The position numbers and the translations under genes are program-made. Below the pieces are notes generated by a model that saw only the letters and a list, made by a program, of their open reading frames with translations, was not told the DNA's origin and ran no database searches. A stretch of 64,000 bases of DNA. Origin: Lytechinus pictus. Lineage: Eukaryota. This document shows, one piece after another, positions 1 to 5,752 of this stretch. Each line of letters begins with the position of its first letter. The first letter of the stretch is position 1. Location of the stretch: NCBI RefSeq assembly GCF_037042905.1, contig NC_087245.1, forward strand, positions 34,038,001 through 34,102,000, written 5' to 3'.

Positions 1-252
1 AGATAAAGAAAGGAAATTAACTTTCCGACGTTGTAACACATAGGAGGAAAGTGGAATTTCTTTTCGGTATCCAACGCAAGGTGTTCCTTTTGTGTTTCTT
101 ACGTAACTGCGTATTTCGAGTTTTCTCGTTGCGCTAACAAGCATATCTTTTCCATTCTCGGCTCAGCATTATTAGCTCGCGCACGTTTGGAAACCAGCTC
201 CAGATTTTCTCTACGAGCCCTGCTACCGTATTTTTTCCGTCAAGATAGCGGC

Positions 253-1038
253 ATGGACGTGGACGAGACCACGCCCGGCCCAGCCACGTCTCACAACATT
301 TTACAAGCCATCCAGGCTCTTCAACGAAAGGTGGACTCTGCCTCCCGGAAATCTGCCAAGCCCGAAAGCTCCCCCTCCTTCAAGAGTGAGGGAAACAAGC
401 AGCAATACGACCACGCCCAGAAAATTTTTCAGTGCATTGACGACGCTCTACATTCGCTGCAGGATATCGATATCGAGGCCGCAAAGGAGCGTCTACTCGA
501 GGCATCCGCCCTCCTTACTCAGAGGCAGAAACTGATTCGCCTGGCAGACCGCTCCCCTTTGGGCTGGGCCACAGTCAAAGAGTATATCGCAGACGACCTC
601 GCGGAGAATTCCGATGACGAAAAACGTCTCAGAAAGGTAATATGTTTTTAATTCCAGAATATTTTATTTTTAACAAAATATATCAAATTTTTCATACGAA
701 TTTTAGCAATACTTGACTGCGTTTTATACCACTGTGCATTTCTTCATGCATTGTTAATTTTTTCATATGCGATTTATTTTCAGGCGGAGAAGGCTGCAGC
801 CACCAAAAGGGCCGAAACAGCCAAAAAGTCGAAGATTCAGCCCCCCTTCCGGGCCCCCCGCTCTTCTGTACCTCCTCGCATTATGCCTGGGACTTTTCGT
901 CGCTTCAACCCCTACCGTTCTGAAACCCGCATCTGCTTCCAGTGTGGCATCTCCGGTCACGTCCGCCCCAACTGCCCCGCTCTGCGAGCCGCTAGAAGTG
1001 CCGTCAACCAGCAACAGCCATCCAAGGCCCCCTTCTAG
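253..1038 (+). CDS. gag: Gag-like protein, spliced join(253..636,784..1038), 212 aa
   Basis: Exon 1 ends ...LAENSDDEKRLRK at AAG|GTAAT (637); AT-rich intron ends TTTATTTTCAG (783); exon 2 continues in phase 0 with AEKAAA... and holds C-x2-C-x4-H-x4-C (CFQCGISGHVRPNC). Confidence 0.85.
637..783 (+). other. 147-nt GT-AG spliceosomal intron in gag
   Basis: GTAATA donor, pyrimidine-rich TTTTCAG acceptor, sharp drop in GC relative to both flanks, in-frame stop at 649-651 if retained, removal restores one continuous gag frame. Confidence 0.85.
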
Positions 1039-3040
1039 TGCCCCACCCGCCTCATCTCTCGACCCGCCTTCAGGCGTGCAAGGTAAATTGAGAAAATGTT
1101 TATCATTCTGGAAAAGTGAATTAAAAGCTTCCAAGTTTGTTTGCGATATTATCGAGTACGGTTATAAAATCCCTTTTGATAAAGTACCTCCCCCATTTTA
1201 TAGCAAGAATAACAAGTCCAGTTTGGATCACCCAGATTTTGTTGAAAGTGCCATCTCTGAATTGATACAAAACAGATGTGCAGTAGAAGTAAAGCAACGC
1301 CCTTATTGCTGTAACCCTCTAACCGTTGCCGAAGGCAAAAAATTACGCCTAGTTTTGGATTTACGTCACACAAATCAGTTCGTTGCACAATCTAAATTTA
1401 AATACGAAGATCTCACTCATATTGCGCAAGTGCTTGGTTCCGAGCAATTTTATTTCTCATTTGATTTAAAGTCCGGCTATCACCATGTCGACATATTTCC
1501 CCCCCACCAGCAATTTTTAGGGTTTTCTTGGACCCATTCTGATTCCGTAGTACGTTATTATGTATTCACTGTACTGCCTTTTGGGCTCAACAGCGCATGT
1601 TATTTGTTCACTAAATTGACAAGGCCACTAGTGTACCACTGGCGTTCACATGGTATAATTGCTTACATGTATATTGATGACGGCCTCATCATTTCACCGT
1701 CTTATGAATCCGCTTTAGCAAATTTGGCAGTAGTAAGGGAAACTATCCGGCGCAGCGGTTTCGTTCCCAATGAAGCAAAGTGTGCTTGGAACCCATCTAG
1801 TAGAATTCTTTACTTAGGATTCCTCATCGATTCACCATCACGCTCGATTTTTGTACCTCAGTCGAAACTAATAAACTTAGTTCAGAGCACTGACGAGCTT
1901 GTGTCATTTTCTAAGGCTGCTGCTCCTGTCCCAGTGAGAAAATTGGCCTCATTCGCCGGACACGTCATTTCAATGAATCTCGCTCTCGGTCCGGTGGCGA
2001 GATTGATGACGCGCGCAACTTATCGCGCAATCGAATCTCGGTCTTCATGGTCCGATTTGATTTTTATTTCCGAATCTGTGCTCAATGAACTGGCTTTTTG
2101 GTCTGCCAACATTTTTTCGCTTAATGGATTTGCATTTTCATATCGCCTTGTACCGACCATGCAAATATTTTCTGACGCCAGCGATCTTGGTTTTGGTGCT
2201 CATGTCCAAGATCATTCACACCTGCGCGTCCACAGTTTGTGGTCACCTTCTGAGAAACTTCAGAGTTCCACTTGGCGCGAATTGACCGCTGTTTATCGCT
2301 CACTCAAAGCATTTTCCAGCCATTGCTTTAACCAAAAAATCAAGTGGTTCTCTGATAATTCCAACGTGCCTCGAATCATTAACCATGGTAGTGTTAAGTC
2401 CGATCTTCATCGTATCGCGCTTGATATTTTCTCTTACTGTCAGTTGCACGATATTGTTATTTCACCGGAATGGTTACCCAGGAGAGAAAATATTTTAGCA
2501 GACAAGATCAGTAAATATCGCGATTATGACGACTGGTCTATCGACGATCATTCTTTCTCACAAGTAGACAACTTGTGGGGGCCACATACAGTCGATAGGT
2601 TTGCCTCCCCCCACAATGCCAAACTTCCCAATTTTAACGCAAGATTTTTTTGCCGGGGCGTTTCCGCCGTGGACGCATTTTGTCAAAATTGGGAATTTGA
2701 AAACAATTACCTCTGCCCGCCAGTATCGTTCATTATTCAAGTAATAAAGCGCATGGCTGCTTGTAGCGCTGTCGGCACGCTGATAGTTCCCCGTTGGCCT
2801 ACCTCCCATTTCTGGCCTTTCATTTGCCCCGACGGCATCCATTTTGATGCGCACATTCACGATTGGAGGATATTAAATGCTTCATTTACTCCCTCCTCCT
2901 TGCACAAAGACAAAGATGTGTTTTGCGAGCAACCGTCATTTTTTACCCTAGCATTACGATACGATTTTAAGCGCTCGCCTAGAACTTCAAACACCGGTTT
3001 TTGTTCTGCTGACTTGGGTTATTGCCCAAATTGTATTTGA
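767..3040 (+). CDS. pol: Pol: reverse transcriptase + RNase H + DNA N6-adenine methyltransferase-like domain (757 aa)
   Basis: RT motifs LRLVLDLR, FDLKSGYHH, VLPFGL, YIDD, YLGF; RNase H FSDAS, WRELTA, FSDN, NILADKIS; MT-like VDRFAS...NAKLPNFN...VDAFCQNW...NYLCPP; uninterrupted. Confidence 0.93.
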   Translation: MRFIFRRRRLQPPKGPKQPKSRRFSPPSGPPALLYLLALCLGLFVASTPTVLKPASASSVASPVTSAPTAPLCEPLEVPSTSNSHPRPPSSAPPASSLDPPSGVQGKLRKCLSFWKSELKASKFVCDIIEYGYKIPFDKVPPPFYSKNNKSSLDHPDFVESAISELIQNRCAVEVKQRPYCCNPLTVAEGKKLRLVLDLRHTNQFVAQSKFKYEDLTHIAQVLGSEQFYFSFDLKSGYHHVDIFPPHQQFLGFSWTHSDSVVRYYVFTVLPFGLNSACYLFTKLTRPLVYHWRSHGIIAYMYIDDGLIISPSYESALANLAVVRETIRRSGFVPNEAKCAWNPSSRILYLGFLIDSPSRSIFVPQSKLINLVQSTDELVSFSKAAAPVPVRKLASFAGHVISMNLALGPVARLMTRATYRAIESRSSWSDLIFISESVLNELAFWSANIFSLNGFAFSYRLVPTMQIFSDASDLGFGAHVQDHSHLRVHSLWSPSEKLQSSTWRELTAVYRSLKAFSSHCFNQKIKWFSDNSNVPRIINHGSVKSDLHRIALDIFSYCQLHDIVISPEWLPRRENILADKISKYRDYDDWSIDDHSFSQVDNLWGPHTVDRFASPHNAKLPNFNARFFCRGVSAVDAFCQNWEFENNYLCPPVSFIIQVIKRMAACSAVGTLIVPRWPTSHFWPFICPDGIHFDAHIHDWRILNASFTPSSLHKDKDVFCEQPSFFTLALRYDFKRSPRTSNTGFCSADLGYCPNCI

Positions 3041-3098
3041 AGCAAACGAGTCCTTATCATGATCAAGTACTCATATTACGATATTAGCTTTTTGCATT

Positions 3099-3293
3099 AT
3101 ACAGGCCGATTTGTGCGCCCTTCGTTCCTTTTGTACGATACAGGCCGATTTGCGGGCCAATAATATTATTTTGTTCTATCGAGGCTGATTTGCGTACCTA
3201 TCATTATCTCTATTTATTCTATCCAGGCCAATTTGCGTGCCTAGTCACCCCCCCCCCCCCCCGTTTTGTGATATACAGGCAGATTTGCATGCC
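3099..3293 (+). repeat. Array of five 21-bp motifs (consensus ATACAGGCCGATTTGCGTGCC) separated by dissimilar 18-31 bp spacers
   Basis: Units start at 3099, 3138, 3178, 3221, 3273. Confidence 0.85.
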
Positions 3294-3400
3294 TAGGTGA
3301 TGTGCAGCCCTTGCTTGCATTGTAATCACACCTTGCTTAGGTCAATTTAAGTTCCTGGCAACTTTTTACCCTGTTATGCCTTCTTTTGCGTTTCTCGATA

Positions 3401-3662
3401 GCTAATAATCATTGCCCAGCTCTGACCAAACATGTTCAATCTTTTGTCATTGTTGTTATTTTTCAGTATTTGTCACCTGAGGTAGATAAAGAAAGGAAAT
3501 TAACTTTCCGACGTTGTAACACATAGGAGGAAAGTGGAATTTCTTTTCGGTATCCAACGCAAGGTGTTCCTTTTGTGTTTCTTACGTAACTGCGTATTTC
3601 GAGTTTTCTCGTTGCGCTAACAAGCATATCTTTTCCATTCTCGGCTCAGCATTATTAGCTCG
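3401..3662 (+). repeat. Internal B-A split direct repeat of the YR element
   Basis: 3401-3533 recurs at the right end (5265-5401, differing in one T-run length); 3484-3662 recurs at 1-179. Confidence 0.95.
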
Positions 3663-4123
3663 ACTTCCCACCCCCCCCCCCTTTTTTTGTTCTTACGGCT
3701 TTTCCCTCACCCCCCCCCCCCCCCGCCCCTGGTCAAACTTGCATTACTTAGTATTCAGGAGCAAGGAGCAAGGGAGTGCGCCCTCGCTCGGTACCCTGGG
3801 ACGCAACCACGTTTCCTCCATGAACTAATATGGGGGTTTTTCGTGGCCTCCGAGTACTAGTGTCTCGTACACTAGTCAGGTACTGGGCGCCTTGCATCCT
3901 CCTTATTCGTTTCCTGTCGCATTGTTATTCTTTTGATTAAATCTAGGTCTTTTGGATACCTACTTTTGAAAAAGTACGTATTAAGCAGCTTTTGGTTCTA
4001 CTCATTACTTTGTTTCTTGAAATTTCTCACTCTGCTTACTGTACAGTATGTATGTCAGTCTTTCGACTGATTTCTTTTTATTAATTTTGTCTAATTTTCT
4101 TGCTCTCATGAGCTAACTTTCAG

Positions 4124-5115
4124 AAACATGGTCCGCCAAGCAAGACTCCATCTCCGATCCGCATCTACGCAGCCTAGCCGCTGATGTTCTTCCATCCCTA
4201 CTCATGTCTGCCAAAGCTTCATCTACCACATCAAAATACAAATCCCGTTGGGACAAATGGGTCCAGTGGGCGAGCTCCAAATCTCTACCCACATTTCCAG
4301 TCCAAGCGTACCACCTCTGTCTATACCTTTCCCATCTGTCTTCCGTTAGCGGGGCCAAGACTCTAGCAGATTCCCTCGTCGCGTCAGTGAAATGGGCGCA
4401 CAGTCTCGCAGGCCTTCCTTCACCCACAGATGACCCTATGGTAAAAACAGCAGTGCAGGGGTATAACCGGACTCACTCTTCCCCTGTTTGTCGTAAGGAG
4501 CCTGTTACACCAGAAATCCTGTCCCATCTTCGCGCATCACACGGTCAGCTCAATGCATCTTTAGCTGATCTACGCATTTTGTTTATATGCTTCATTTCTT
4601 ATGCTGGATTCCTACGCTTCGACGACCTTAGCAGGATAAGAAGGAAGGACTGCACTCTTCATCATGACAGGCTAGTCCTACACTTACCCTCTTCTAAAAC
4701 CGATCAATTCCGCCAAGGCAGAGATGTTACCATTGCTAGGACATCCAACCCGACCTGTCCCGTCATTATAGCCGAGCGATATTTCGCAGCTTTAGGCGAT
4801 CCTCCTCATTCTCACCTACCAGTGATTCGCAGGCTTGCTCGTTCCAAACGCGGTCTAGTCGCCACTTCTCACGGCCTAAGTTACACCAGAACTCGCGAGA
4901 TTGTCCTGGAGGCGTTGAAGCCCCTTGTTCCCGACGTCTCTAAGTTCGGTTTGCACAGTCTCCGGTCGGGTGGAGCTTCATCCGCTAGTAACAATCGAGT
5001 TTCTCCCTTTCTGATTTCACAACATGGTCGTTGGAAGTCAGACAAAGCCAGGGACACATACATAAAATCGGACGCAACGTCAAATCTTCTTCCTTCACAA
5101 TCCCTCGGGATTTAA
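4124..5115 (+). CDS. Tyrosine recombinase (first in-frame Met 4204; frame open from 4117, probable splice acceptor at 4123)
   Basis: Catalytic set R (FLRFDDL), K (SKTDQ), HxxR (HSLRSGG), H (HGRW), Y (RDTYIK); N-terminal core-binding region STTSKYKSRWDKW. Confidence 0.93.
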
Positions 5116-5240
5116 GCTTCAAATCCCAATCCTTTATCATTGTTGTCGAGTTAATTTTCTTGGCTGTGTTTTTGCTTATGCATACTTTGCAATGTTCATA
5201 TCATTCTGAACAAATATGAGTCTATTGAATAAACAGCGAG

Positions 5241-5401
5241 CTAATAATCATTGCCCAGCTCTGACTAATAATCATTGCCCAGCTCTGACCAAACATGTTC
5301 AATCTTTTGTCATTGTTGTTATTTTTTTTTTCAGTATTTGTCACCTGAGGTAGATAAAGAAAGGAAATTAACTTTCCGACGTTGTAACACATAGGAGGAA
5401 A
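5241..5401 (+). repeat. Right-terminal B repeat with a 24-bp tandem duplication at its start
   Basis: CTAATAATCATTGCCCAGCTCTGA at 5241-5264 and 5265-5288; identity to the internal repeat ends at ...ATAGGAGGAAA (5401). Confidence 0.92.
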
Positions 5402-5752
5402 ATAATATTGAAAAGGGTGAAAATAAACTCTTCCGATAATGTAACCAACATATAATATATAAATCGTTCAATAACGGAAGAGACGACTGATTTACGAGGC
5501 TATTACTTTTTGGAATTTACAAAGGGTTTTTTTACGTTGCTAAATTCCAAAATTATTCTAATGAACCATAACTGTGAAAAAACATTTGTTCGTTCGCTCG
5601 AAATGAGGTATTAGTGTTGGGAGTTGATATTACTTGTCCCATAATTCGGAGGAGAAGAATATTTATAACAATCTAACCCAGTGTAATTATCAAGCTTCTA
5701 ATTATTTGAATCCAGACTAATAGGCCTTCGTTTGAATTAAGCTGGAGTTCAG

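Follow-up and report, generated by a model that had tools for sequence, protein, structure and literature searches.

A 64,000-nt stretch of the Lytechinus pictus genome (contig NC_087245.1, positions 34,038,001 to 34,102,000 of the forward strand; hereafter the window) contains an intact PAT-type (Pat1-like) tyrosine-recombinase retrotransposon of the DIRS order, and the spacer following its pol gene harbors an array of small, tandemly repeated hairpins. Based on a comparison with related elements, the array probably functions as a signal on the RNA of the element rather than being a junk repeat. The loop motif ATTTG of the hairpins and the pairing of its flanks are kept in four of five relatives in which the remaining spacer no longer aligns. 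In its specific form, namely that the array represents a tandemly duplicated cis-acting module providing a multivalent binding signal for Gag or reverse transcriptase (RT) on RNA containing gag and pol, this interpretation is given a probability a little below even.

The initial annotation had described five 21-bp units separated by 18, 19, 22 and 31 bp, and all of these were recovered at the positions given. A repeat search returned a single family with five copies of 36 nt starting at positions 3090, 3129, 3169, 3212 and 3264 (spacings of 39, 40, 43 and 52 nt), which are 67–75% identical to the reference over 36 nt. The degenerate core AGGCHRATTTGYRBRCC was found five times in the 64-kb window, where 0.05 occurrences are expected, and no shuffled sequence reached five. 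Tandem Repeats Finder, applied at a score of 30, did not call the array. The conserved block comprises approximately 30 nt rather than 21, as it consists of TTTTGT, 9 nt and then the hairpin and extends about 10–14 nt farther in 5' direction (TTTTGYnnnATaCAGG...), with TTTTGT starting about 14 nt before the AGGC of the initial annotation. The earlier statement that the intervals have only their pyrimidine richness in common stands only in part: the unit includes TTTTGT, and four lineages have kept the 9-mer CGTTTTGTG. The free linker between units amounts to just 8–21 nt of low complexity, represented by CTT, TAT repeats or poly-C (including a run of 15 C), and the linkers of units 3–5 open with a common TAgTCA. 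The individual units are as follows:

3090..3128, + strand: unit 1, TTTTGC, 9 nt and a weak hairpin at 3104-3119 (GGC/GCC, 3 bp, loop cGATTTGTGc), followed by the linker CTTCGTTCC
3129..3168, + strand: unit 2, TTTTGT, 9 nt and a hairpin at 3143-3158 (GGCC/GGCC, 4 bp, 8-nt loop GATTTGCG, folding energy -8.6 kcal/mol), followed by an AAT/TAT linker
3169..3211, + strand: unit 3, TTTTGT and a decayed hairpin (AGG/CCT, C.A and T.T mismatches, loop GATTTGCG)
3212..3263, + strand: unit 4, ATTTAT and a hairpin at 3225-3242 (AGGC/GCCT, 4 bp, loop cAATTTGCGt), followed by the poly-C linker 3248-3262
3262..3299, + strand: unit 5, the best-preserved one, CGTTTTGTG at 3262-3270 and a hairpin at 3277-3294 (AGGCA/TGCCT, 5 bp, 8-nt loop GATTTGCA)
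3339..3356, + strand: unit 6, a decayed copy reading AGGTCAATTTAAGTTCCT, identical to unit 4 at 14 of 18 positions (counted by eye), with ATTTA replacing ATTTG

Relatives of the element were identified by a word-based protein search, which returned pol relatives at 52–77% identity. Five relative lineages were compared with the window, showing pol identities of 64% (L045/L046/L047), 65% (L169), 65% (L171), 59% (L170) and 57% (L048); the closest pol relatives (P0001, P0004, P0006, P0008, P0012, P0014 and P0016, at 61–77%) are left out of this comparison. Among each other, the six lineages (window plus five) are 56–67% identical in pol and roughly equidistant. Their non-coding DNA does not align, except for a conserved block around the junction of the element's split direct repeat (B|A). 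Four of the five relatives possess, in the spacer following pol, two to five small hairpins whose loop reads N-ATTTG-NN, and the stems of these hairpins differ or are changed on both sides:

L169: AATGC-cGATTTGTGt-GCATT; GCC-GATTTGTG-GGC; CGTCA-CATTTGTGA-TGACG; plus two hairpins of 3 bp
L170, hairpins 1 and 2: AATGCC-AATTTGTA-GGCATT; TAATGC-cGAATTTGCGa-GCATTA
L170, hairpins 3 and 4: ATGC-cGATTTCAGa-GCAT; TGCT-TTATTTGGT-AGCA
L171: TGCAT-CATTTGGT-ATGCA, present in two copies
L048: CGTG-TATTTGTT-CACG; GTCTTA-GATTTGG-TAAGAC; GCC-AATTTGA-GGC; TAC-CATTTGA-GTA

The arms AGGC/GCCT of the window correspond to ATGC/GCAT and TGCAT/ATGCA in the relatives, meaning that both sides were changed and pairing was retained, and other hairpins of the relatives feature unrelated stems beneath the same loop. 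In all lineages, the motif is located on the sense strand. An unbiased count of shared 8-mers returned GCCGATTT and GCCAATTTG and, in addition, CGTTTTGTG. The latter occurs exactly once in the spacer between pol and B1 of the window (3262-3270), L169 (2824), L170 (2652) and L045 (2488) and is absent elsewhere in those elements. Moreover, duplications are lineage-specific, with repeat lengths of 79 nt in L169, 27 nt in L171 and 40 nt in the window; because each lineage made its own duplications, it is suggested that multiplicity of the hairpin is favored.

Families of the same genome featuring 28–41% pol identity possess neither the array nor ATTTG hairpins. A scan of JGI metagenomes with a two-unit pattern yielded at least 120 loci, all of which are unrelated tandem repeats and none of which matches the element, and metagenome and viral contigs scanned with pol gave no match. 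Likewise, a search of positions 1-5600 against Rfam at an E-value of 1 or better returned no family match, apart from one chance match outside the array.

In order to quantify the association of loop and stem, occurrences of ATTTG within a 7–10-nt loop closed by at least four Watson–Crick pairs were counted in the six spacers. This applies to 12 of 27 ATTTG words compared to 7.5% of the other spacer positions (p 1.8e-7); at a minimum of 3 bp, the same scan gave 20 of 27 compared to 20% (p 2e-9). ATTTG was also found to be looped in the relatives considered alone (9/21, p 1.6e-5). Since these parameters were chosen with the data already seen, all 798 spacer 5-mers were put through this test and ranked. 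ATTTG came out on top (p 2.2e-7, five lineages), and the 5-mers next in rank, GATTT, TTTGG and TTTGC, overlap with it. Controls were negative: none of 45 ATTTG words was looped in the post-pol regions of ten families at 28–41% pol identity from the same genome, the reverse-complement word CAAAT was looped in none of 11 cases in the element, and outside the spacers approximately 3 of 47 ATTTG words were looped.

Pairing was counted by script on gapless, ATTTG-anchored segments, since MAFFT displaced some of the short hairpin rows. Stem pairs 1–5 are of Watson–Crick type in 8–12 of 13 rows and comprise 2–4 pair types each, while pairs 6–7 are unpaired. Loop positions 2–6 read A-T-T-T-G in 12 of the 13 rows; the exceptional row (L170 2783) is one base out of register and was scored as mismatches. 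The covariation of the stem, which had been proposed as a check, is thus present, and compensatory or replaced stems of this kind, together with the enrichment of p ~2e-7, are as expected for a structured cis-acting RNA. Conservation of the loop above flanks that are unrelated in sequence but still complementary points to a single-stranded hairpin rather than a double-stranded protein-binding site, and the single orientation of the motif suggests the sense strand. Selection on the hairpin unit and its ATTTG loop, as postulated in the initial annotation, is in line with these results obtained from five relatives, in which the loop is kept and the stems covary or are replaced.

Within the 812-Mb assembly, 13 copies of the spacer were detected, which are 92–100% identical. 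Unit number, which was to be compared across copies, is five in 13 of 13. Indels among the copies are confined to the linkers, affecting CTT (unit 1), the number of TAT repeats (unit 2) and the poly-C run of unit 4 (10–30 nt), and about ten substitutions are distributed over cores and linkers alike. The 13 genomic copies are too young for showing selection. A genome-wide search for motif pairs returned the 13 family copies and one unrelated satellite on C19, and nothing else. About 30 of 40 nt align head-to-tail between the units and linker length varies, as is typical of the decayed 40-bp tandem repeat that had been named as one half of a refutation; the array indeed arose through tandem duplication. 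The other and decisive half, namely that the units are not conserved in related families, is contradicted by the ATTTG-loop hairpins on different stems in four other lineages. The question is what maintains the array.

The array resides in a spacer of approximately 360 nt extending from the pol stop to B1, and its distance to B1 amounts to about 100 nt from unit 5 or 44 nt from unit 6. The host element comprises the following features:

253..1038, + strand: gag, consisting of exon 1 (253-636), a GT..AG intron (637-783) and exon 2 (784-1038), assigned from the relatives' Gag, which is contiguous over the join
767..3040, + strand: pol open reading frame (ORF) encoding RT, RNase H and a Dam-like methyltransferase (MT), assigned by Pfam; its stop lies 49 nt before unit 1
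3400..3698, + strand: internal split direct repeat B1|A2 (B1 3400-3533, A2 3534-3698)
4204..5115, + strand: putative tyrosine recombinase (YR) ORF of 303 aa within the second cassette (A2-YR-B2), which is without hairpin array

In pol, Pfam recognized RVT_1 at 6.9e-18, and weaker matches to RT_RNaseH and Dam follow in the expected order; relatives carry PF05869. The recombinase ORF features HSLRSGG and ...DTYIK, candidates for the catalytic motifs HxxR and Y, and the Pfam scan gave no match for it. B1 (3400-3533) equals B2 (5265-5401), and A2 equals A1, which starts at position 51; A1 from 51 and A2 (3534-3662) are 100% identical. An A1 ... B1A2 ... B2 layout with the internal repeat located between MT and YR corresponds to the arrangement of nematode-form Pat1 or Kangaroo elements (PMC4157794). 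According to the same study, a zinc finger in Gag separates Pat1-like elements from Toc and Kangaroo (PMC4157794). Such a CCHC knuckle (CFQCGISGHVRPNC) is encoded at 934-975 in gag exon 2, and the pattern CFQCGIxGHVRxxC is present in the window Gag and in all three translated relative Gag ORFs (L048, L169 and L171). The gag intron is 147 nt in length; joining position 636 to 784 gives ...RLRK|AEKAAA..., which is contiguous in Gag of L048, L169 and L171, and the pol ATG at 767 falls within this intron.

Further observations concern the surroundings of these features. Within the conserved block, a second small hairpin is located shortly before the B|A junction (window 3495-3509, repeated in B2 near 5363-5377). 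It reads GGAAA-ttaac-TTTCC in the window, AGAAA-ttagc-TTTCT in L045 (near 2835-2850) and AAGAA-atttggt-TTCTT in L170 (3262-3278), so that both arms differ from one lineage to another. Between A2 and the recombinase start, positions 3820-4203 of the window contain seven ATGs that open short ORFs, and the YR frame is blocked at 4114. For the recombinase, a leader that is spliced or special in some other way is probably required. In L048, the sequence ttttgcag, resembling a 3' splice site, is found about 170 nt before the YR ORF. Long poly-C runs are present in the window at 3248-3262, 3671-3682 and 3710-3729. Directly upstream of the element, a tandem partner was found (L044 3121-4050, covering the 880 nt ahead of the window and its first 50 bases), which is without gag, pol, array and B1. 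It carries a further deletion equivalent to 3699-4608 and hence has the structure A-(deleted YR)-B, immediately next to the full element. At other chromosomal sites, there are also A-YR-B cassettes that lack gag, pol and array (G000:C5:41189678-41191550 and G000:C4:13507542-13509485; 95–98% identical), and an A-B 'solo' is located at C10:16088322-16088586. The cassettes may have been mobilized independently or formed in place by A1/A2 recombination; their origin is relevant to a possible requirement for the array in cis.

For the element, a mechanism is proposed in which each module would consist of a U-rich stretch (UUUUGU) followed by a stem-loop of approximately 5 bp with an 8-nt loop N-AUUUG-NN. 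The hairpins would form on the sense RNA and jointly provide a multivalent platform for an element-encoded protein. Gag would be the likeliest partner, acting via its conserved single CCHC knuckle, and RT the alternative one. Retroviral knuckles favor unpaired guanosines exposed in packaging structures (PMC4576207). Since the array is located upstream of A2, it would, as we guess, be carried by gag-pol RNA only and be excluded from any recombinase transcript started in A2. Equally speculatively, it could single out the full-length RNA as a substrate for packaging or reverse transcription in the way the retroviral Psi marks unspliced RNA. We infer the binding partner, the strand concerned (RNA or minus cDNA) and the role of the array. 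The earlier suggestion of iterated binding or packaging hairpins holds as regards the hairpin unit, which is conserved across relatives; as regards the binding protein, Gag, RT or YR, it is a matter of inference. Extending the proposal to the whole clade, the cluster of ATTTG loops could be the signal through which the RNA of Pat1-like elements enters packaging and reverse transcription, recognized by the single CCHC knuckle of Gag, with the position of the cluster separating the full-length template from a recombinase-only transcript; this extension is tentative and considered rather doubtful.

Several findings weigh against a hairpin signal on the element's RNA. Copies consisting of the A-YR-B cassette alone exist without the array. 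The stems of units 1 and 3 of the window are decayed. Single hairpins are weak (-2.1 to -8.6 kcal/mol) and fold no better than shuffled sequences (z -1.45 to +1.13), and the same is true for the entire 361-nt spacer (z 0.14). Because the folds match shuffles, thermodynamics alone provides no support for structure, and the support comes from the comparative data. Summed folding energies of the two strands are equal (plus -89.9, minus -91.9 kcal/mol), and G.U pairs that would mark one strand were looked for in the stems and none was found. Each relative is represented by a single contig from a metagenome or sequencing run. The fifth relative, L045 (2545-2706; also L046), features TGCC-TTTCC-GGCA four times at this place and no ATTTG loop. 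Its hairpins combine the same stem with a different, shorter loop, and one copy has ACC/GGT, that is, changes on both sides; a switch in loop specificity may have occurred in this lineage. Finally, the scan parameters (loop of 7–10 nt, stem of at least 4 bp) were fixed post hoc, which is mitigated by the 5-mer ranking and the controls.

Alternative explanations differ in the molecule on which the array would act. At the level of double-stranded DNA, the units could be an enhancer made of iterated host transcription-factor sites, either POU/octamer-like (ATTTGCAT) or CCAAT-like (GCCAATTTG), serving a start in the downstream A2. A perfect octamer ATTTGCAT is indeed present in unit 5 and in L169, ATGCAAAT occurs in the spacers of L169 and L171, and GCCAATTTG is common to unit 4, L170 and L048; moreover, the array is located 100–440 nt upstream of A2, which is a copy of the element's 5' end. 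However, only ATTTG is common to the units, whereas the three bases completing the octamer vary freely (GTG, GCG, GGT, GTT, GAG), the motif has one orientation in all lineages, and a double-stranded site leaves the complementarity of unrelated flanks unexplained, so that an enhancer appears unlikely. The hairpin and UUUUGU could also be an RNA-processing signal instead of a packaging signal, governing how 3' ends form or are read through at B1, or how stable the gag-pol mRNA is, and thereby setting the ratio of gag-pol message to full-length template. A U/GU-rich stretch follows each hairpin by 10–20 nt, one copy of CGTTTTGTG has been kept in the spacer of each of four lineages, and A opens and B closes both cassettes, which hints at 3'-end signals within B. 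Such a role is nonetheless improbable, as neither AATAAA nor ATTAAA was found in 3000-3700 and a processing site does not need multiple hairpins. A quite improbable alternative is that the hairpins act on the single-stranded minus cDNA, for example by priming or placing the start of the second strand, or as recognition sites of the recombinase or the Dam-like methyltransferase. Folding of the minus strand is no weaker than that of the plus strand, and DIRS-1 intermediates are mostly linear single-stranded cDNA, with the way in which synthesis is primed being unknown (PMC7192593). A sequence-specific recombinase core site, however, would need longer and more uniform arms, and GATC is absent from the units.

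The array could also be a decayed minisatellite of 40 bp, evolving neutrally within a variable spacer, its likeness to the relatives' motifs being due to chance or mutational bias. The head-to-tail alignment, the shared linker start of units 3–5, several between-unit differences that are CpG transitions, changes among the 13 copies that are as frequent in cores as in linkers and the tandem duplications of every lineage are all compatible with it. Against this stands the recurrence of the loop motif, flanked by pairing arms, in four further lineages with 56–67% pol identity (p 1e-5 to 1e-7) and clean negative controls, and the minisatellite is therefore already disfavored and of low probability. 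According to the initial annotation, the units might furthermore be successive 3' splice sites, decoy or alternative ones, steering splicing toward the recombinase ORF. Each window unit indeed shows a T-rich tract followed by AG|G, and the element has one real spliceosomal intron, in gag. However, AG|G forms the first part of the stem, the AG belonging to its outer portion, and it is missing from the relatives with their ATGC, TGCAT, CGTG and other stems; in addition, an acceptor at this position would leave a leader of 900–1100 nt in which 10 ATGs precede the start of YR, and the YR frame is blocked at 4114. This explanation is considered highly improbable, and the corresponding part of the initial annotation is not supported.

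Some candidates were rejected altogether. Methyltransferase (Dam) sites, also suggested initially, find no support in units that contain no GATC, and no target of the element's Dam-like enzyme was found described in the literature. Recombinase core sites were discarded in view of arms of 3–6 bp that differ within one element. A histone mRNA 3' stem-loop was considered due to GGCC...GGCC and TTTCAGAGC in L170; it requires a 6-bp stem and a 4-nt UYUN loop, whereas the hairpins described here have stems of 3–6 bp and loops of 7–10 nt. A reading as NFI or AP-2 palindromes was likewise rejected.

Tyrosine-recombinase retrotransposons represent the least understood order of retroelements, for which the choice of RNA, packaging and priming are not known (PMC7192593 for the primer). 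A full-text literature search found no description of hairpins of this kind in PAT or DIRS elements, nor of a packaging signal for the DIRS order. If true, the interpretation as packaging and entry signal would provide the first defined cis-acting RNA signal of its kind in this order. An iterated stem-loop beside a Gag knuckle also offers a cheap handle for binding and structure work, consisting of a 20-nt RNA and a small protein domain, and the hairpin gives a sequence signature for annotating the clade. From the methodological point of view, a minisatellite-like repeat in a mobile element can be distinguished from junk through lineage comparison.

Among known systems, retroviral enhancer repeats in long terminal repeats (LTRs) and minisatellites of transposable elements resemble the array in their head-to-tail units of approximately 40 bp within a non-coding stretch and in linker slippage. 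Unlike these, the core described here is conserved across lineages at 56–67% pol identity and its flanks covary as a stem. The 3' untranslated region (UTR) stem-loop of 'stringent' LINEs, which is recognized by RT, and the 3' hairpin of DIRS-1 resemble the array, which likewise places small hairpins behind the RT gene of a retroelement whose mode of priming is not known. According to the DIRS-1 study, no primer has been determined (PMC7192593); only the 3' hairpin was proposed for this function, by Poulter and Goodwin (cited in PMC7192593). In contrast to these hairpins, the array is iterated and not located at the 3' end of the full-length RNA, as YR and B2 follow, and a priming role is without support here.

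Closer likeness is seen to signals that mark genomes for assembly. Several RNA viruses and the hepatitis B virus (HBV) use sets of stem-loops sharing only a loop motif for this purpose (PMC6281560, PMC7612645). The packaging stem-loops of single-stranded RNA viruses and of the HBV pregenomic RNA (RGAG loops) have several degenerate stem-loops with nothing but a short loop motif in common, and multivalency, as features shared with the array; they are spread across the genome, whereas the hairpins described here are clustered in one spacer of 200–270 nt by local tandem duplication. The Psi signals of retroviruses and LTR retrotransposons (PMC4576207, PMC7599994) are likewise stem-loops of the genomic RNA with a G-containing loop, and the element studied here encodes a Gag with a CCHC knuckle; as in the case of Psi, the position of the array would confine the signal to the full-length RNA. 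Psi differs in being located in the 5' leader and in forming one composite structure, whereas five to six near-identical tandem modules are located 3' of pol in the element of L. pictus, where binding is putative.
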